This document shows, in pieces, positions 692 through 11,202 of a stretch of DNA of 64,000 nucleotides. The translations under genes and the position numbers were made by a program. The stretch comes from Klebsormidium nitens. Its lineage: Eukaryota; Plantae; Klebsormidiophyceae. The stretch lies in NCBI GenBank assembly GCA_000708835.1, contig DF237149.1, forward strand, positions 62,001-126,000. The letters run 5' to 3'. Every line of letters begins with the position of its first letter. Positions within the stretch are counted from its first letter, which is position 1. The notes below the pieces were generated by a model that saw only the letters and a list, made by a program, of their open reading frames with translations, did not search any database and was not told where the DNA came from.

Positions 692-3600
692 CTTTTTGGG
701 GATCGCGTGCACGATGTCGACCGCCTCCTGGTTGGTGACGTACTCCCACAGACCGCCCGAGGCGAGGATCAGGAACTTGTCCTGAAAACGTAAGCTTGAT
801 GACGTCAGTACCGGAGGTGGCAACATCACAACGAGCAGATCCCAAAGAGAACACCCCTGTGCATCTCAATCAGACACCCCATCAGTGCTCAAAAGACGCG
901 TTCTGTGCCTGTAGATAGCGCCGTTCTCGGTTGCACTTCACCGTCCCCGTAAGCTTTTTCCACCGGAAGGGTCCGTTGGCCAAGTGGGGTTGAGAATAAT
1001 GCGGATGTGATCACTAGGCCGCGAGCTGACGTTACAGGTCCTCATGCCTCTTAGCTTGCTTTGGAGCGCTTCTTCGAAAGTTGCATCGCTTTGCGCCAAC
1101 GGTCAATCACTACAAACTCTTCCTTTACGAAGCTCAATTGGAGAAAGGGCCGACCTTTGCACGCAGGGTATAGATCGCGACGTGTGGAACGGCGGTGATG
1201 AGCGGCGGCGTATAGTGGCCCGGCACGCGGAAACGCGGGAAGAGCGGATTCCGGTTGAAGGCAAGGCTCTTCATGTAACAGTCGCCGAACGCGCGCGTGA
1301 CCTGCGAAGCGAGAAGTCGTAACCGCTTGAGATACCGCAAAAACTTCGAAACTTTGTTCGTTGATGAAACGGCTCGGTGGCGCTTGGCCGCTTCAAATAA
1401 GGAGCGCGCAAGCCTGTTCACGGTCTGGGAAATGGGGGAGCAGTTTTTGAAATGCGAAAACCAGGAGAATATATCTCTGCTCGGAAAGGACACTGAACGA
1501 GGGGCGAAGGGAACGTGACCTTCATGCTTTAAGTGGACGACGATCTCCTCGCTCCTTTCCGGTTTGTCGTGATGGCCATGGCGGCAACAGATCCTCAGAA
1601 CGGAAAGCGCGCAATGGAACGACTAGAAACGGAACTAATCGTTAGTTGAACTGATGACGTGGCAACCCACCTGCAACTTCCCCTTGATCCGGGGCCCGCC
1701 GGGCGTTTCCATCACGAGGTCCGGCGTTCCGGGGTGTTCCGTCAGGTACTTCGCGCGTTCCGCCGGAGCCTTGACGCTGTGGTCCACGCTCAACTGCAGG
1801 ACGCACAAAGCGCTGCGTCTCATCGGTCTGTTTGATTCAAGCAAGCTTCTAAGAGAGGCGCGCAAGGACAAATACGTCACCAACGTGAAGCACAAAAGAT
1901 GCTATTGTAACGAACCAAAATGATGCGTTCTGACGCGCATTCAACTTTTCGTTAAGTGTAGTTCATTGCAAGAAGTCCTCATCCAACGTAGGCCGTCATT
2001 GCGGGTGCTTTGTATGGAAGCCCGGCACGTCTGCTCCCGTGATACTCATAGAACGTCATGAATAGGCAAAGAAACTCAGCCGAGGATGATAAAGAGTAAG
2101 GTCAAACGTAGTCGCATCCGCCCTAACCTGGACCGCAATCAATGGCGCGCCGTCGCATGGAACCAGTAAACCGCGCGGATGTCGCCGCAGTTGGCGACGA
2201 AGAGCGCGCCATCGGTTAGAAACCCGACGACCCTCGTCTTTTAAAAAAAAGCCCCAACCCAAGTCTCGTCAAGCGTTAACGTGGACCGCGATAGGTCCGC
2301 TCTCGTCCAAACTCCCAAGACCGCGCGGCATTTGCCGCAGTTCGGCGACGTAGAGTTACGGCGCGCCGTCCAACGCAGTCGAACAACCAGTCTGAAGCCT
2401 CAGAGCAAACTGCAAACCAAGCCTGGTCAAGCGCTAACCTGGACCGCAACGGGCGCGCCGTCGTCCAAAACCCCTAAAACTGCGCGGCTGTCGCCGCAAT
2501 TGGCCACGTAGAGCGCGCCGTCGGTGACGAGCGCGACGACCGCGGCCGCGCCGACGCACGCCAGGTGCGGCGCGTTCTCGAACTCCTCCGTAACTAGGGT
2601 GGCGAACTGCTCCTCCGTGTCCTGCAGGCATAACCAAATTCATAAGCAATGACAGCAGTACGGTCGCGCCGAAACTCCTCCGTAACTAGGGTGGCAAACT
2701 GCTCCTCCGTATCCTGCAGCCACGGGCGATTGAGAAGTGATATAAGCGATGACTAAGAATGACGTCGCATTCGACATCTTTCAGGTGGGAAAATGCCCTT
2801 TTGAAACTCGGCGGCCATAAGCGGGTGGGGTCAGCCGAGTCCTATGCAGAAACATACCATAGTGAAATCAAAAAGAATTCTGTGCCGAGGTGCTCTCGAT
2901 ATGCTGCAGCTATAAGCAGGCGCCAAAAGCTGAACGCCGGTTTTGAAGGAGAGTGGCAAACGGGTTCTCTAATGGTCCACAAAGACGAATTGCAATAATC
3001 ATTTCTCTTTCATTTCTGATTTAGCCTTACGATATCCGGAAAGCTCGTGCTGCGGAACGGAGGGAAGGACCTTATCCAAAATGCCGCGTATGGAAAATCA
3101 TCAACGGACCCTGACTGGCCTTTAACGTATCAATGTATTCTAAAGGCGCCCGTCGGGCATGCTAATAAATACGAGCTAGTGTTCTTTAACACGTATTCAC
3201 TTCCTTTCAACCGACTTACCTCAAACGCTTGCAGAATCGCAGCCCCCGACACCCCGTTCCCGGCGACCATGGCCCTCTGCAAATTCCTGAACAAGGTCGC
3301 CTCCACAAACGTCGCGGCCTCGGAGCCCCCGTGACCGTCGTAAACCCCCATGAAGACGCCGCTGTTGCTCGCTTCCACCTGCAGGGGGACGGGTTATGGA
3401 CCGCGCTTATCAGAAAAAGGCGGCCGCTTATAAGGCTTGGATAGAAGGAACTGTTATTGCTCGCTTCCACCTGCAGGGGGATGGCTTTTAAGTCGCTCAT
3501 ATGAAAACAAGGTCGCTGCTTATATGGTCTGCAAAGATGTGAGGGCTTTCGGGGTACGCTATTGTTCGCTTGTACCTGCACGGGAACAGCTTATGTATAG

Positions 3601-4366
3601 CTGTTGCCAAACGGCGGCTACCTATGACTTTTACACGAGAATGGAGGAGCCTTGAAAACGCCCGCTCTGGCATGTGAGGTGCCACTTCGTTTTGTGCTGC
3701 CACAACTACGAAAAGGCTGCAAAGTGCTTTTGGCACGACGAGACGGGGAGTCTCGAGTTTTGTCAAGAACTGATGGCTGGTAACGACGCCCGTATTAAGT
3801 AGAGGAGGTATGAGGGACTGCACTCGATCATAAAACACCGCTGCTTTTCTTCCACCTAGGAGAACTCAAGAAAGAACACTCGTATCATACTCAAAGGCAG
3901 ACTTTAACGGAGCGTCATTGGGCTTAAGAACACGGGCGAACTTTGTAAGCGGGGCTCAAGACATTCTTATGAGCTTGCAGATTGCCTTTAATGATCCCTC
4001 CTCGTTTCGGGAAGTTTGACCGACTGATTTTGTAAGCAGAATCGTAAGCGCTTCCCTGCCGGTACAAGCCAACAGGAAGCAGAAGTATTGGAATGCTAGA
4101 ACCTTCAGGACCTCGAAAGCGCAGAAACTGAAGCGAAAACCCGAAACGATGACTGGAATCGATGCGCGAAACGATAACCCGAACAGATAACCCAAAAACG
4201 AGTAAGATATACGCACCTGTGACGTGTCCTCCATGACGTAGTTGGCCTCGTACATCGCAAAGCTGAAGTCGCCGTAGCTCGTCTTCTTCAGCTTCTCCTG
4301 CCACATGCCGCCGCGGTCGCGCTGGGCCTTGAGCCTCAGGCTGGCGCAGTCGGTCGGGACAGCACT
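692..4366 (-). CDS. PP2C/PPM phosphatase moiety, plant clade-D-like, of the fusion gene
   Basis: Motifs: GDFSFAMYEANYVMEDTSQV, GVYDGHGGSEAA, LYVANCGDSRAVLG, VQLSVDH, RIKGKLQVTRAFGDCYMKSLAFNRNPLFPRFRVP, DKFLILASGGLWEYVTNQEAVDIVH. Order and content match plant PP2C.D proteins. Confidence 0.93.
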
Positions 4367-7300
4367 CTGCAGGAGCGACCGGGCGATACTATGATTGTTT
4401 AGTTTCCTTGTTATTCTTTCTCTCAATCTGCATGACCGCGTATGCCAATTTTTCAGCAGATTGAGAACAACATGGACAGTTTTCTCACTCGACTTAACGG
4501 GGACAGAGAGCATTCCAAAGACCTGTCCACGTTATGTCCTTTCCAATCTGAGAAGTGGAAAGTCAGCAGAGACTCAGGGTGAGCAGAAAATGGAGTGGGG
4601 GGATGATTATCAACGAAGAATGAAAGAGACAGAAAGCGTACCGCGATACGTCGTTTCAGGCTCGAGAACTGGAACCCGGGCGCCACGTGTGGGGTCGGGT
4701 TGACGAAGACTCCCTTCAACCGGTCGCTCTGGCCCAGCGGTTCAGCCGCCCCGTGGAGCGCAACGTCCAAACCGATCTGGTTAAGGAGCAGAAACGGTGT
4801 TGGTCAAGCTTGTTAAGGATGGGTTAAGTCACCCTCGACCGGTCGGTTCCGCCGCCCGTGGAGCGCAACGTCCAAACCGATCTAGCTAAGGAGCAGAAAG
4901 GGCGTTAACCAATTTTGTTCAAGATAGGTTAAGCTTCTGTCTACGGTCCGTCCCGCTGCCTCGTGCAGCCTGTCAAGCCCAATCTGGTTAAGTAGCACAA
5001 ATGGCGTTAACCAAGCTTGCTAAGATGGGCTGAAAATCTTCTTATTGGTCGATTTCGCTGCTCCGTGCAGCGATACATTGAACGCGAGTTGATCGAAAGT
5101 AGAAAGTCCTTTAACCAAGCATGTGAATGACGGGTCAATCCTCTGCTTCATGCAGCGAGAGATTAAAACCAATTCGACTGAAAATTTCTTTAACGAAAGA
5201 GGTTGATGCCGTACCAGATTGGTCTTGACGTTGCGTGATTCAACAAGGGTTCTACGTCATGGTTAAGAAGCTCAAAAGAAGGTTAACCACAACAACATCT
5301 ATTTCGGTAAGCTGCAGGACAAGTGGCAACAGCACGACGGGAAAGACCGTCTCTGCCTCAGCTTCCTTCTTTTCCTGTCATTCTTTAGGACAATGACCTG
5401 AGACCACACAAAGAGAACAACTAGATCGAGCTACTGACCTCTTCTTCGTGCCTCGGCACTCTCAGCCGCCCAAAATACCTGAGTGTCCCGAACAGCGTCA
5501 GGGTTATGGCGCCAACCCACGCGTATACCAATAAAAGCGCCAGGATTTGTACGCCCAGTAAGTGCCCGCTGCCCCCGTAGAAAACGCCCACGTCGCGCGG
5601 GTTTTCGATGCCGTAGGTCGACCGGATTCCGTCCGCTGTGGCGAAGAGTCCGGCGGAAAGTCCGCCCCAGGTGCCGCACGCCAGATGCACGGCGACGGAG
5701 TGCACTGGATCGTCGATCTCCAGGAATGCCTGCACGAGCATTTGACACGTGTCGATCAAAGGCGAGGCCCGTGAAGCAGACCACAAGTGCTGAGATATCG
5801 GTGTCAGACGCATGTGACCATTTTCTGCTTGCTTTGAAAATCCTAGAATGGGCAACGGAACCGGAAAGCTGGGCGAACTTGGAGCCTGAGCCACACCTTG
5901 TCGGTCGCCTCAACCCCGACCACTACATCGGTCAGAAGGCGACCATGACGCGAAGTGTGCAGCTTTGAAGTCGCCGAGAAGCGTACATAACGACAGCTTT
6001 GATTCTTGGAGTACCCTTTTGTGTCTCGTTGAGCGCCAGAACGGCTCTTCCAAGCGTGTCCTCGGAGCTGGACAAAGCAAAATGGATTATCTACATCGCA
6101 AAAACTGCTGAAGCCCCTCCACTTAGGAGCAACGTCTTAGCAATGCTTGTCAACTCGCCTCTGCCAGTTCCTGTTTCAAAGCGCGCAGGTCACTCGAGGG
6201 CGCTTCTTTCCACTCGAACCGTTGAAGCTTGGAAAAGCTTTTTGGATACGTGCTTACCTAAGAGGCCCCCTTGATAAACAGACTACGTGGTTCGTGTTGC
6301 GAAGACAAAAGCAAACAGAATCCTACCGAAACTTGCTGAAAGCCGACGAAGAAAGCGGAGTACGAACCATAAGGCGCACTCCCCGCAGGTAGATCGCCGA
6401 TTCACCATCCCGCTCAATTGAAGGAAGTTTCAAGGAAGAGTCGAGGACGTGTCGAGGCAAATTAAGAGGCGGATCCGTTTGAGGGCGGCAATAAGGAAAA
6501 TAAACCGGATCCAAACCGGGATTAAGAATGACGTCAAAATCAGACCACAAACCATACGGCGGACGCCCCTTCGGTAGATCGCCCCAGCCACCATCCCAAT
6601 CAACTTGAGGAAATATCAAAGAAGAGTCAAGGAGGTGTTGAGGCAAGATAAGAGCATAACCCTAACCCTAAAAAGTGCCAAAACACACAAAAGCGGACCG
6701 AAATCCGGGTTAAGATTTGAAAAACGAACCATGAGGCGGACGCCCCCCAGGTAGATCGCCCCGGCCACCATTCCAATCACGCACGCCGCCCAGCTGTCAG
6801 TCACGGAGCTAGTAGCGCAGGCCGCCACGCACCCCCCCAGAACGGCGTTGAAGAGATGGTCGGGGGGGGATCCCCCTCGCCGCGTCGTCATGAAGTAAGC
6901 GGTGCAGCCGGCGAAAGCGGCGCAGAGCGTGGTGTTGGAGCAGACGCGCGCGAGCTGTTCGTACCACACCTGGGGGGGATGCGCGCGAGCTTACGTCAGC
7001 ATAGAGGCGTTAGTGCGTCAGCAATCTCCGTGAGTTTCGGAGGCAGCTGCAGCTTCTTTTCAAGAGTACGTAAGGACGAGACAAAATGCGTACGAAAAGG
7101 AGCCGAAATGATGACACAAATGAGGAGGGAGGTGGGACCATAAGCAGAATGCTGACAAGACGCGGAGCGTAGATGAAGGGGAAGGAAAGGAAACATATCG
7201 ATCGTAACGGTGATACTCTGAGATTTTGACAGCAAACTAGGGGGGAAGAGAAGCAAAACCTCTGCCAGCTTGTGGACGAAGAGAGACCTAAGAGCGAACA

Positions 7301-10300
7301 GGAACCGCCCTCCGGAATGTTGGGTCATGCTGGCTGTTCAGCGAGTAGCATAAGAAGCCCCTGAAAATATATGTTGCAAACATGTTGCAAAGATGTTGCG
7401 CAGTCTGTGAGCAAATGAGTCGGACAAAGCCTCGGGGAAGACGGACGATCAGATTGAAGGATGACTTTATAGGAATTTGAAAAGCTGTCGTTCATTAAAG
7501 AATTGCCCGGAGAGGCGGTCGCAAGTCTCGGCAGGGACGAGGACAATTTTGTGAAAGGTAGAGAACCCTTGAGCGTCTGATTGCGTGCTTCAGAGCGAAG
7601 TCGTGGTTTTCCTTGAGTGCGCTTGAACCAAGAGCCAGCGTTTGAGCAGGATTCTCAGGGATCCGCAAATTCCTTTCGAACAGAAACCCTACTTGGATTC
7701 GATGCAAGCCTGGAGCCGACTCGCAGATCTTAAGCTCTGTGAGTCGGTTGAACGTAGATAGGTTCGGAAACCTAAGTTTCAACAACCGGCTGGTCTTCAG
7801 CAGACTCGGCCGCAAGTGGCGATAGCTTACAATGATGTCGAGGGACCCAAGATCTACGCTCCCTGCGTTGAAGCCGTAGAATCCGGCCCACAAGATGAGC
7901 GTTCCGGCGGCCACGAAGGAAACGGAGTTGGGCTTGAATGGAACGGGCCGGCCCTCGATGTCATACCGCCCGATGCGGGGGCCGACCATCCATGCGGCGA
8001 CCAATGAGGCGACGCCACCTGGCCGGCATCGGAGAGAGCTTCAGCGTGAGGAGGTAGGTAGAACTGTGGGATGCTTCATTTTCATTGAAACGAGTTGATT
8101 TGTAGAGTACACGAAGCGTTCGCTTCCTTGTGAGAAAGAACTTGGAGGGCGTTCGACAGCCAGCTTTGGCTTCGTCGTCGTTAAGACGTTGTGTTTGAGC
8201 CGTTATGGGCACCATTTGGCTCTGACTCCGGTGCAGGTGACAGTTACTTCAACGCACTTCCACAGGAATCTCAACGGCCGGCTATCCAAGAAGCTCGTCT
8301 GCATACGTCTGCCTTGAGTTACTTCTTTTCGCCTTACGTTGGATCCAGCCAGCAAGCTGCATCAAACGTCCCACAGATTAACGTCGACACGTGTCCCTTA
8401 CCAGTAACATGTACGACTAGCGAACCGGCGTTGTCGAGGACGCCATCCGTGCCCAGGAATGCGGTTTCCCTAACCCGCGCGCCCATTAACCCTGTGCCTG
8501 CCCAGATGAAGTGCGCAATCATTGGGTACATGAACCCGCTGTGTACGACCACGTACAGAAGGTACGCTTTGAGGCGAAACCGCTCGGCGACCGCTCCCGA
8601 GGTTATGGTAACCGAGGTCGCGGCGAAGGTGTACTGGAAGAAGAAGTTGACCTGGGAGAGGAAAGTTGAGAATTTGATGCTAAGATTCGTCATCTTAGAA
8701 TCTGAAAAGAGGAGGGTTTGTGGATCTGGTTATGGTAAGCGACGTCGCGGCGAAGGTGTACTGGAAGAAGAAGTTGACCTGGAGAGAAACTTGAGGTTTG
8801 AGGGCTTCGCTTTGTCATCTTAGAATCTCAAAAGAGGAGGGTTTGTGGATCTGGTTATGGTAACCGAGGTCGCGGCTCAAGTAGACTGGAAAGAAGAAGT
8901 TGACCTGGAGAGGGGAAAGTATTAGAGCTTTGTGATCTTACGATACTGTGAAGTCAAGACGAGCTTAGCTTTCCATCTTAGTTTGATGACCCGCATTGCG
9001 GCAGACAATTGTGCGAAGAAGACCTGACATGGAAGCCGCCGGTGATCCCTGAAGAGACTCGCGAATCGCCCAAAACGGCAGCGAGTTTACTGAGAAAAGA
9101 ATCACACTTGGAAGAGGTAGCTGCTACAGCTTTCTGCGGGAGTCAGACAACGGTGATCGCTCAAACGACTCACGTATGGGTCTTCGTAATTGCTGAATCT
9201 TGCAAAGAACAGCCATGAGTTGAAAGAACCAAGCTCTGCACGTAGTGCAGAAGAGGCAACGAGCAGAAATACTGAGAGGGGGAGCAACCTACCTGATTGC
9301 CTTCGTTGAACAAGGCAATCGATTGCGACTCGTTTCGCCACCCGATGACCGACGAACCCTCGCCAAAGCCAAGGGCCCAACCAAAGGTCCAAAAAGCGGC
9401 CGCACAGAAACATGCGTCCATCACATTTTTGACCTGCAAGCGGAGTTGCAGTGTTCGTGCAATGGCATGTCTGGGTGAAAGTGTCAAGGTGCGGTTTGCG
9501 AGCATAGCGTCTCAAATCGCTAGCAAGAGGAAGGTTTGTGACGTACAGAGCACTGATTGAAAGCCTTAGACCCTTAGGAAGCAAACAAGTGGGCGTCTAC
9601 GTAGGTGTTCCAACTATTAGCAAACGCTCGGTAGATTGGGCAGAATCAGTCCGGCAATGCTAGCTTGCACAAAGAGCAGCTTGCACTAAGATAAGCACCC
9701 GAAAGACGGGTGAAATTAGATTGGGGGTAGGGTGGGTGCGGGCACGGAGCGCACGATTTCTTTGATCAGGGCTTGAAGTTTGGTGCCCGAGAGCTGGTGT
9801 CTTAGTGCAAGCGGCTTTTAGTGCAAGCAAGCGTTGCCCGTATGGCAGAATCCTTCCATTCTCACAAAGAGGGGCAAAATTTTGAACAGTTCGTTTTCTT
9901 CATGTGAAGGGGCAGCCGTGGTTGGGCGTACGAACTCTTCATTGCAAAGTGACACTCGCAAATTTGCGTCCTGACAATCATCATCGCACTTCCTGGAGTG
10001 ATACAAGAATGACCAAGCAAAGTGATAAGATTCACTTTGCAAGAGGCTGCAATTTGCCAGTTTATGGAGATGTGGAGAAACCTTGGAGCTCGCTTACCAT
10101 GATGTTCTGTGTGTTCTTTGCCCTGACTGATCCAGCTTCAACCAGGGCAAATCCCACCTGCACGCACCAGAACCAAAATTTGCTAAATGCTAAGCGTCAG
10201 GAAAAAATGGGGCAGTCGTGACAGTTTTAAAAGTCCTCTATCTGATTGTAGTGATACTGGAGTACCTCTGCTTTGAAGCTGAAACGCCAAGCTTCTCGAT

Positions 10301-11202
10301 TACCCTAAACCAGAAGAGAGAGATTTATTATTGAAGAGGCGGCCACAAAGCTGACACCTGTCAGCAGTTAGTGCACGTGCTTAGCTTGTCAAGCCCCCAC
10401 CTTGGCAGACAACTAGATGAAATGCTGACATTAGGGAGGCGCAAGCTTTCTCTTGAGGTAATTATGTGACTTACACTTTACTGCTTTTCTTGGTGGCTCC
10501 TTCTTTTCTGGAGTGGTTTGATTATAGCTTTCTCTCACCAACATGGGTATTTAGTCACAACAATGTCGACGTAGGATTCTCCTACGGCAATCTCTTGCCG
10601 TACCACCTCGATTGGTTGAAGGTGTGCCCTTTTATTCAGAACTTCCTCAAGAGATATATATGTGCTGGTTTTTCTGAAGGTACCCAAATGCACTTTCTCT
10701 GGGCTTCCAGCTACTGGCCTCAGCCCGAGGTCTGACTCAACAGTTTGTGCAGTGCACAAAGGCACAGACCAGCTTGACCCCTCACACAATGACACCCAAC
10801 TCATCAACGCGTTGCTGACAGCTGTCCAATATCAGTCAAAAGCACAGCTCTCGGGGGATGTGCCAATTGCAGCCACCTTATGTGAACCTCAGCGAGAATG
10901 TGGGCCGCTGGGCGTCAAAGTCAGCAAAGTCACTCAGACAAGTCACTCACAGTCGCTGCTTAAACTCAAAATATCATAAGATGGTGCAAGCAAGGACACC
11001 ATGACCAGCCCGCAGAGCATTCCCAAACAACAGATTTCTGGACAATCAACCTGTTTGTGCGGTTTACCTGCATGAAGAACACAATGGTGGCCGCCTGCAG
11101 CCGCCAGATGGCAGCGTCTGTGTGGGCGGAGACAGACGCTTCGTGCTGAAGCGTTGCATTCAATGCCGCGCCCAGCTGGTCCAACTCAGTCATGCTCGCC
11201 AT
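692..11202 (-). CDS. Ammonium transporter (Amt/Mep/Rh) - PP2C (clade D-like) fusion protein; at least 14 exons, 764 codons resolved, 3' end probably beyond the left edge
   Basis: Hand-spliced exons: 11202-11068, 10157-10098, 9433-9293, 8651-8402, 8018-7831, 6969-6730, 5729-5439, 4776-4642, 4366-4217, 3378-3220, 2621-2439, 1793-1671, 1301-1155, 781-692. All introns are GT-AG and phases match (2292 nt). No stop codon lies between the AMT and PP2C parts. Confidence 0.8.
2110..2400. repeat. Two degenerate intronic copies of the donor end of PP2C exon 2621-2439
   Basis: aacctggaccgcaa…gcgcgccgtc…gtcgccgcagttggcgac…agagcgcgcc recurs at about 2125 and 2278. Confidence 0.8.
4642..11202 (-). CDS. AMT1: Ammonium transporter moiety (AMT1-like) of the fusion gene
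   Basis: Motifs: FFMQVGFALVEAGSVRAKNTQNIM, KNVMDAC, FFFQYTFAATSVTITSGAVAER, DNAGSLVVHVTGG, GTLILWAGFYGFNAGS, LEIDDPVHSVAVHLACGTWG, LRVPRHEEEIGLDVALHG. Both conserved pore His residues are present. Confidence 0.95.
4780..5120. repeat. Degenerate intronic copies of the acceptor and start of exon 4776-4642
   Basis: cgcccgtggagcgcaacgtccaaaccgatct…taaggagcagaaa is repeated near-exactly at about 4853, with fading copies at about 4960 and 5060. Confidence 0.8.
6345..6730. repeat. Degenerate intronic copies of the donor end of AMT exon 6969-6730
   Basis: gaaccat…ggcg…cccc…ggtagatcgcc recurs at about 6364 and 6550. Confidence 0.75.
8655..8915. repeat. Intronic copies of the acceptor and start of AMT exon 8651-8402
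   Basis: cgcggcgaaggtgtactggaagaagaagttgacctgg and ctgaaaagaggagggtttgtggatctggttatggtaa are each repeated. Confidence 0.85.

Follow-up and report, generated by a model that had tools for sequence, protein, structure and literature searches.

The window analysed here, 64,000 nucleotides of Klebsormidium nitens scaffold DF237149.1 (assembly GCA_000708835.1), carries on its minus strand, at positions 692 to 11202, a gene in which an ammonium transporter (AMT) module is followed by a PP2C-type protein phosphatase domain. Exact spliced alignment and tblastn identify it as the gene of the deposited protein GAQ84673.1 (P0157; 891 residues, 16 exons), and the scaffold copy of this locus (L006) agrees with the window with 0 mismatches over 11,202 bases. 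Exons 1 to 14 lie inside the window and exons 15 and 16 at 212 to 1255 nucleotides past the window start. In a tblastn search of the window, AMT-PP2C fusion proteins were colinear with it over both halves, and one of them, GAQ84673.1, matched every exon of the gene. By Pfam, the stop-free stretches of the minus strand between 11202 and 5439 are pieces of PF00909 and those between 4366 and 692 pieces of PF00481; in the protein, PF00909 covers residues 33 to 446 (E value of 3.4e-97) and PF00481 residues 517 to 780 (9.7e-42). The locus is an already annotated gene, and an earlier note made from the letters of this DNA had re-found the deposited gene model.

Many PP2C.D phosphatases of charophytes and bryophytes have been reported to carry an N-terminal AMT domain and were named AMPC (PMC11665922, PNAS 2024); the fusion is reported to have been lost in vascular plants, and the authors suggest autoregulation of the AMT by its own phosphatase. 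By its domains the gene is a member of this family, with an N-terminal PF00909 and a C-terminal D-clade-type PF00481 both present. The architecture and GAQ84673.1 itself are thus known, and the belief of the earlier note that no such chimera had been described does not hold, since GAQ84673.1 was deposited as a fusion and AMPC has a published name. In the literature that we searched, no other paper deals with AMPC, and no functional test is reported. The exons inside the window, and the intron on which the fusion depends, are the following.

11068 to 11202, minus strand: exon 1, residues 1 to 45, start codon at 11202-11200; N-terminus of the AMT module (exact spliced alignment, tblastn).
10098 to 10157, minus strand: exon 2, residues 46 to 65; Q45/E52 of the N1/N2 signature (spliced alignment).
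9293 to 9433, minus strand: exon 3, residues 66 to 112; N68, D71 and A72 (spliced alignment).
8402 to 8651, minus strand: exon 4, residues 113 to 195; T127/S130, D185 and H193, the first pore His (Pfam, spliced alignment).
7831 to 8018, minus strand: exon 5, residues 196 to 258; FYGFNAGS pore motif (Pfam, spliced alignment).
6730 to 6969, minus strand: exon 6, residues 259 to 338 (Pfam, spliced alignment).
5439 to 5729, minus strand: exon 7, residues 339 to 435; second pore His, H353; ends in ...RVPRHEEE at a GTCAGT donor (joint to 4776 in RNA).
4642 to 4776, minus strand: exon 8, residues 436 to 480, 135 nucleotides, 45 codons; cytosolic tail of the AMT, IGLDVALHG...SSLKRRIA, without a stop and followed by GTACGC; the codon of A441, at the position of AtAMT1;1 Thr460, is 4761-4759, and the basic patch SLKRRIA stands at the 3' end.
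4367 to 4641, minus strand: intron 8, 275 nucleotides, GTACGC...CTGCAG, phase 0; all other introns of the gene are longer.
4217 to 4366, minus strand: exon 9, residues 481 to 530; the remaining linker and the N-terminal PP2C.D motif ...MWQEKLKKTSYGDFSFAMYEANYVMEDTSQ.
3220 to 3378, minus strand: exon 10, residues 531 to 583; YDGHGG metal-binding motif (Pfam, spliced alignment).
2439 to 2621, minus strand: exon 11, residues 584 to 644; ANCGDSRAVLG motif (spliced alignment).
1671 to 1793, minus strand: exon 12, residues 645 to 685 (spliced alignment).
1155 to 1301, minus strand: exon 13, residues 686 to 734; RAFGD motif (joint to exon 14 in RNA contigs of runs X1 and X3).
692 to 781, minus strand: exon 14, residues 735 to 764; ASGGLWE, with the GGC codon 757-755 encoding G743 (RNA contigs cover 700-780 without differences).

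The two halves meet at the junction RRIA/SAVPTD (4642/4366; the slash marks the splice joint), which is in phase 0 on both sides and identical in GAQ84673.1 by exact spliced alignment. On the acceptor side, ...CTCCTGCAG stands directly before 4366, and exon 9 reads SAVPTD...YEANYVMEDTSQ to 4217. The in-frame, phase-0 splice over a 275-nucleotide intron that the earlier note had claimed is therefore reproduced exactly by the alignment, whereas its description of that intron as pyrimidine-rich applies to the 5' part (72% in the first 100 nucleotides) but not to the whole (55%). Its reading-frame count was also right: reading on through the donor adds 62 codons before a TGA at 4455-4453, and from that stop it is 146 nucleotides to the first Met codon in the PP2C exon (4306-4304), where about 150 bp had been claimed.

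The GAQ84673.1 model comes from this same DNA and is therefore no independent evidence for the fusion, so other species and transcripts were examined. A search with exon 7 against 1.84 billion representative proteins yielded top matches that included no ordinary plant AMT1; the highest-ranking named relative came from Closterium and has both AMT and PP2C domains by Pfam, and an AMT-PP2C protein of Chara braunii came next. Proteins of 875 to 1085 residues with both PF00909 and PF00481 were found in Chara braunii, at least six Closterium strains, Mesotaenium endlicherianum, Marchantia polymorpha and M. paleacea. K. nitens itself carries two AMPC genes, the one described here and that of its paralogue GAQ77789.1, which has the same architecture. 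The domain search of streptophyte algae that had been proposed as a check thus returned AMT-PP2C proteins from several of them and also from liverworts, and this conservation supports the claim of a single gene with an AMT fused in frame to a PP2C.D-like phosphatase.

In the paralogue, one exon (L007:10402-10668) is free of stops from VGLDVAYHGG via the linker to YEANYLMEDTWH; AMT tail, linker and PP2C start thus lie in one exon, and the fusion there is independent of splicing. Five contigs of 2.8 to 3.7 kb from two studies (L001 to L005; four runs belong to a single series, the fifth does not) each contain one intron-free open reading frame with both AMT and PP2C, of 904 to 911 residues, with AT-rich flanks that resemble untranslated regions; one contig ends in sequencing adapter. 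Because both K. nitens genes have 14 to 15 introns, these contigs are best read as mRNAs. A diverged Klebsormidium-like metagenome contig, L009, has the junction itself: its tail exon ends ...STIRKRFS/GTGAGC and is followed by TTTTTGCAG/RVSSDC...RDRGGVWHKKL, in phase 0 as in the GAQ84673.1 gene, across an intron of about 2 kb against 275 nucleotides. Compared with L009, the proportions of nonsynonymous and synonymous differences (pN and pS) are 0.16 and 0.70 for the AMT half and 0.18 and 0.62 for the PP2C half, which points to purifying selection on both halves; synonymous sites are near saturation and therefore only the direction of these ratios is informative. A further contig with AMT exons 93% identical, L008, stops before the linker and is uninformative on the junction. 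We consider that the fusion is very probably real.

At the locus itself, RNA contigs were compared with positions 700 to 6690 (5,991 letters; depth 2 to 7). Two joints were each confirmed in contigs of two runs, 5439/4776 (X1 and X4) and 1154/780 (X1 and X3), the latter annotated as 1155/781 with a cut that is ambiguous by 1 nucleotide. A 142-nucleotide contig (X1 record 2) matches 4642-4778, ends exactly at the donor of exon 8 and continues with 5 letters unlike the intron. This end fits use of the 4642 donor and leaves the acceptor unnamed. A search of the protein collection with residues 400 to 580 for RNA-derived open reading frames across the junction returned only genomic frames from related organisms, which run on into introns.

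Some acceptors inside intron 8 were considered alongside 4366. Those at 4492 and 4483 are in frame and are possible alternatives. The one at 4522 is less likely, since with its first two bases the contig match would have continued beyond 4642. The frame of exon 9 is open for 55 codons upstream of its acceptor, to 4531, and includes an ATG at 4513-4511; this open frame (4367-4531) may be due to chance or may be the start of a PP2C-only isoform. Its peptide is marginally similar to the AMT tail and the Chara linker, a score that about 1% of shuffles reach. We also asked whether intron 8 echoes the AMT tail and dropped the idea: the protein similarity is marginal (score of 30 against 19.2 +/- 3.4, reached by 22 of 2000 shuffles), and there is no repeat at the DNA level. 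Outside the alga's own runs, 37% of the sampled words of intron 8 occur in run X25 (795 million letters), which is labelled as a different organism; that sample therefore contains near-identical Klebsormidium DNA.

The AMT half corresponds to an 11-helix AMT1-type transporter (residues ∼33 to 446). Across the aligned AMPCs, D185, H193, H353, W162, F121, F245 and S249 show little or no variation, and by motif we take them to be the equivalents of AmtB D160, H168, H318, W148, F107, F215 and S219. By motif, the canonical pore set of twin His, Phe gate, Trp/Ser recruitment site and conserved Asp is thus present.

In the cytosolic tail of AtAMT1;1, phosphorylation of Thr460 turns the transporter off (PMC13745463); it was observed in the phosphopeptide ISSEDEMAGMDM(pT)R, within ...EDEMAGMDM(pT)R (PMC3378073). 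The corresponding AMPC motif is EEE-x-GLDV-A-x-HG, and GAQ84673.1 reads GLDV-A-LHG with A441 at the Thr460 position. This position is Ala in 14 of 15 AMPCs and Val in the remaining one, whereas of the 16 unfused relatives that the same search returned, 13 have Ser or Thr there. The canonical Thr460 phospho-switch is thus missing from the AMPC family, and the classical AMT1 switch cannot be the target of the phosphatase.

Among solved structures, the best matches of the AMT half are the bacterial ammonium sensors Sd-Amt1 (8QJ3, 2.7e-50) and Ks-Amt5 (6EU6). All side-chain ligands of the N1/N2 sites of Sd-Amt1 are present with the right spacing (Q45, E52, N68, D71, T127 and S130), and AtAMT1;1 has Cys64 where AMPCs have Glu52. 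The published sensor signature is QX6EX15NX2D[F/T]X54-60TX2[S/T], in which the F/T residue acts as a ligand only in Ks-Amt5 (PMC11152129); GAQ84673.1 has Ala72 at that position and does not match the strict pattern. AtAMT1 transporters belong to the same N1/N2 cluster (PMC11152129), so the signature cannot separate a sensor from a transporter, which counts against taking it as proof of sensing. The module looks sensor-like and is compatible with a sensor or a transceptor.

Between the two halves lies a linker of about 70 residues, 68 to 109 residues across the family and poorly conserved save for a basic patch: SLKRRIA at the end of exon 8 aligns with TIRRRLS, SLRKRLT, KLRSRCS and SVRKRFA in other AMPC linkers. 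In an AlphaFold2 model of the whole protein, the predicted local distance difference test score (pLDDT) is below 50 over residues 432 to 531; the model was made from 13 sequences, has a mean pLDDT of 58.7, with the PP2C half mostly at 50 to 78, and was used for linker confidence only. The linker is probably flexible. Because its length is variable, its conservation poor and its pLDDT low, this suggests a tether rather than a rigid transducer of the kind of the Sd-Amt1 HAMP connector.

The second half is a PP2C.D-type domain (residues ∼517 to 810), a clade assignment that follows PMC11665922 and search scores, not a formal tree. Its closest named stand-alone relatives are of the PP2C 28/42/68 type (E values from 1e-51 to 1e-118), with clade A at about 1e-11. 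The motifs MED, DGHGG, GDSR, FGD and HDDIT are intact. The ASDGLW motif, by contrast with these other catalytic motifs, reads ASGGLW in this gene (GGC at 757-755, G743), where all 12 of the other AMPCs examined and L009 have Asp; RNA contigs from two runs cover the codon and show no differences. G743 aligns with the Asp of 'LATDGLWE' in PDP1, and its mapping to PPM1A Asp239 rests on the universal xxDG[LI]W[DE] motif of PP2Cs. In PPM1A, Asp239 binds metal 1 as well as the third metal (PMC13297126), and its position is substituted in the pseudophosphatase TAB1 (PMC8622459). The PPM1A ligand set (Asp60, Gly61, Asp239 and Asp282) is thus incomplete in GAQ84673.1: D544, G545 and D802/D803 are present and the Asp239 equivalent is G743. 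With Gly in place of a metal-1 ligand, the PP2C domain of GAQ84673.1 is probably weak or inactive.

We consider it highly probable that the locus is an AMPC gene whose single mRNA encodes an AMT module, a flexible linker and a PP2C.D-type domain. In a working model for such a protein, an AMT trimer in the plasma membrane would bind and conduct NH4+, keeping the N1/N2 ligand set of bacterial sensors, and would hold the phosphatase domain at the membrane beside its own cytosolic tail. Ammonium occupancy or transport could then be coupled to the dephosphorylation of nearby targets. Candidates for these would be Ser or Thr residues in the linker or in adjacent subunits, or else known types of PP2C.D substrate, for instance the plasma-membrane H+-ATPase. 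Worded in this way, the tie between ammonium binding or flux and dephosphorylation is a tentative proposal about which we are more doubtful than confident, and for the GAQ84673.1 copy it is weakened by G743. A role in binding or regulation, possibly together with the intact paralogue, would be more likely for the PP2C domain of this copy.

Several observations weigh against a fused messenger at this locus. The RNA check across 4642/4366 that the earlier note had proposed went only halfway: the donor is apparently used, but over the stretch covered no contig or read bridges 4642 to 4366, and the support for acceptor 4366 comes from the gene model and from related genes. A single contig covers 4366 (X3 record 8, 4351-4605), and it is colinear with the genome and so unspliced. 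Expression is weak, with at least 5% of the sampled words present in five runs. Of the acceptors after 4642, the one at 4547 stands in the most favourable branch-point and polypyrimidine context, and its use would end the AMT after 17 codons (TAA). The L009 orthologue has a frameshift in exon 7 (L009:6093-6403), an in-frame stop in exon 13 (L009:15264-15416) and FGN for FGD, and it may be decaying or poorly assembled; P0199, a contig of the same kind of organism, reads exon 7 intact. Finally, genome-derived fusion models elsewhere could in principle be merged neighbours, an artefact that is argued against by the single-exon paralogue and the transcript contigs.

Direct RNA evidence at the locus is thus thin, and the fused protein could be a gene-model artefact of two adjacent transcription units or of a dominant isoform pattern, with an AMT-only mRNA made by retention of intron 8 or by the 4547 acceptor and its favourable context, and a PP2C-only mRNA that begins within intron 8 and is read from the ATG at 4513 or at 4306. 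The colinear X3 contig crosses the predicted acceptor, X3 assembled PP2C 3' exons but no AMT exon, and the open frame upstream of exon 9 offers the first of these start codons. However, a 55-codon open frame arises by chance about 7% of the time, and the 94-nucleotide intron implied by 4547 would be far shorter than the other introns of the gene (275 to 1000 nucleotides). Exon 8 has no stop, and its RNA match ends exactly at a GT donor with extra letters. Purely intronic contigs occur elsewhere (5201-5399, 4927-5160 and 4749-4868), and the runs therefore contain pre-mRNA or DNA; among the alga's RNA runs intron 8 is present in X3 alone (0.90), by a run search with the intron that cannot quantify retention. 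The junction is kept in L009, the basic patch that closes exon 8 aligns with other AMPC linkers, and proof that such an architecture exists comes from the paralogue and the transcript contigs. We regard an artefact as very improbable and the fused mRNA as, in all likelihood, the main product, besides which there may be minor AMT-only or PP2C-only isoforms.

If the fusion is accepted, the PP2C of GAQ84673.1 might be fully active and dephosphorylate its own C-terminal region, as in the autoregulation model of PMC11665922. A precedent exists in the PP2C ABI1, which activates AtAMT1s (PMC9516733), and the remaining catalytic motifs are intact, the linker has 10 Ser/Thr residues with Ser481 right after the basic patch, and the PP2C half shows the pN/pS pattern of purifying selection. 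Set against this are Gly743 in place of a metal-1 ligand that is Asp in all other AMPCs examined, and Ala in 14 of 15 AMPCs at the known AMT1 target, so that we find full activity of this copy unlikely. The AMT module could instead be a pure receptor like Ks-Amt5 and Sd-Amt1, binding NH4+ at N1/N2 without net transport and passing a mechanical signal to the phosphatase. The structure matches and the full Sd-Amt1 ligand set, including the Glu that AtAMT1;1 lacks (C64), fit such a receptor, but Ala72 breaks the strict signature, which requires Phe or Thr, AtAMT1 transporters share the N1/N2 cluster, the pore residues are all canonical, and the linker, variable, poorly conserved and of low confidence, is unlike a HAMP or coiled-coil connector; we think it quite unlikely. 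A bolder extension of our own model, and one we would give little chance, is that AMPCs are true eukaryotic ammonium receptors or transceptors, with a complete N1/N2 site that includes the Glu lacking in AtAMT1;1 and freed of the Thr460 switch, and that in K. nitens the family has divided into an active GAQ77789.1 and the G743 pseudophosphatase, the latter perhaps modulating the active copy, for example in mixed trimers, or trapping substrates.

The AMPCs used for comparison (among them Chara braunii P0007, Marchantia polymorpha BBN10952.1 and K. nitens GAQ77789.1) have the same order of PF00909 and then PF00481 and 47 to 52% full-length identity to GAQ84673.1. Common to all are the C-terminal region motif EEE-x-GLDVA-x-HG, the basic patch of the linker and the PP2C entry VW..L..T..G.FS.AMYEANY.MED. 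GAQ84673.1 differs from the other AMPCs examined in being the only one with Gly at the Asp of ASDGLW, and from its paralogue in having an intron in the linker, where the paralogue exon is continuous.

Like AMPC, the bacterial proteins Ks-Amt5 (Amt-histidine kinase, PMC5764959) and Sd-Amt1 (Amt-HAMP-diguanylate cyclase, PMC11152129) carry a signalling enzyme of the cytoplasm on the C-terminus of an Amt module. GAQ84673.1 keeps Q, E, N, D, T and S of their N1/N2 sites, and they are the closest sequence matches of its AMT half in the PDB. Unlike them, AMPC has a phosphatase as its output, Ala at the F/T position and a long and variable linker, probably disordered and not helical, and its origin is eukaryotic and independent. 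Bacterial AMT-SpoIIE fusions likewise join an ammonium transporter to a phosphatase of the PPM fold (SpoIIE being PP2C-like); they are phylogenetically distinct in both domains, which implies independent origins (PMC11665922).

In Arabidopsis AMT1;1 and AMT1;3, the Thr460 switch is regulated in trans by CIPK23 and the PP2C ABI1 (PMC9516733, PMC13745463). AMPC resembles this system in its AMT1-type sequence, in the conserved cytosolic motif beside the last helix and in the involvement of a PP2C, but the AMPC phosphatase is in cis, Ala441 replaces Thr460 and Glu52 stands against Cys64 of AtAMT1;1. The N-terminal motif ...FS.A..QAN/EANY..ED of plant PP2C.Ds is found in AMPC, whereas vascular-plant PP2C.Ds are stand-alone proteins of about 380 to 400 residues without an AMT. 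Plant PP2C.Ds are SAUR-inhibited regulators of the plasma-membrane H+-ATPase. The fusion thus joins nitrogen uptake to the phosphatase clade that controls the proton pump of land plants, and AMPC marks a state lost by vascular plants and published in 2024 in one paragraph, without a functional test. For the published idea of autoregulation, our analysis bears on three points: the Thr460 switch is missing, the ligand set of the sensors is present, and catalysis by GAQ84673.1 is probably lost.

Among the best matches to exon 7 were also diplonemid transcriptome proteins of 1,500 to 2,800 residues (P0003, P0004, P0005 and P0009, from Artemidia motanka and Namystynia karyoxenos). P0003, scanned in full, combines two AMT modules with an adenylate/guanylate cyclase domain (PF00211), and the other three match AMT in two stretches. 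These AMT-AMT-cyclase giants are, like AMPC, eukaryotic fusions of AMT to a signalling enzyme, in an unrelated lineage.

Phase 0 introns make up 14 of the 15 in the GAQ84673.1 gene against 10 of 14 in the paralogue (L007:3001-14934). Both genes share the intron positions EE/VGLDV, MEDT../, KGKLQ/VTR and K/EIAR, and the linker intron is found only in the GAQ84673.1 gene.

Five exon boundaries of the gene (4750-5170, 8601-8907, 6362-6779, 3352-3535 and 2581-2722) are accompanied in the adjacent intron by two to five tandem, decaying copies of the boundary itself. The copies are spaced at 92 to 185 nucleotides and include intact-looking decoy acceptors or donors with the first or last codons of the exon; the RNA joints use the copy that adjoins the real exon. 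The example nearest to the junction is the following.

4750 to 5170, minus strand: tandem echoes of about 105 nucleotides of the exon 8 acceptor and its first codons, giving decoy 3' splice sites in intron 7; the RNA joint uses the last copy, 4776.

In L009, it is the acceptor of the first PP2C exon that has echoes, about three in number (L009:9900-10320, in units of GVFLQRVSSDC...). The K. nitens intron at 4367-4641 is short and has no echoes, and the exon 8 acceptor is echoed instead. The sites of the echoes differ between K. nitens and L009, and the echoes therefore turn over between relatives.

On the scaffold, the gene is flanked upstream by a Usp-domain gene on the opposite strand and, past the window start, by an NMT1-domain gene (L006:1-2849 and L006:20158-24458).

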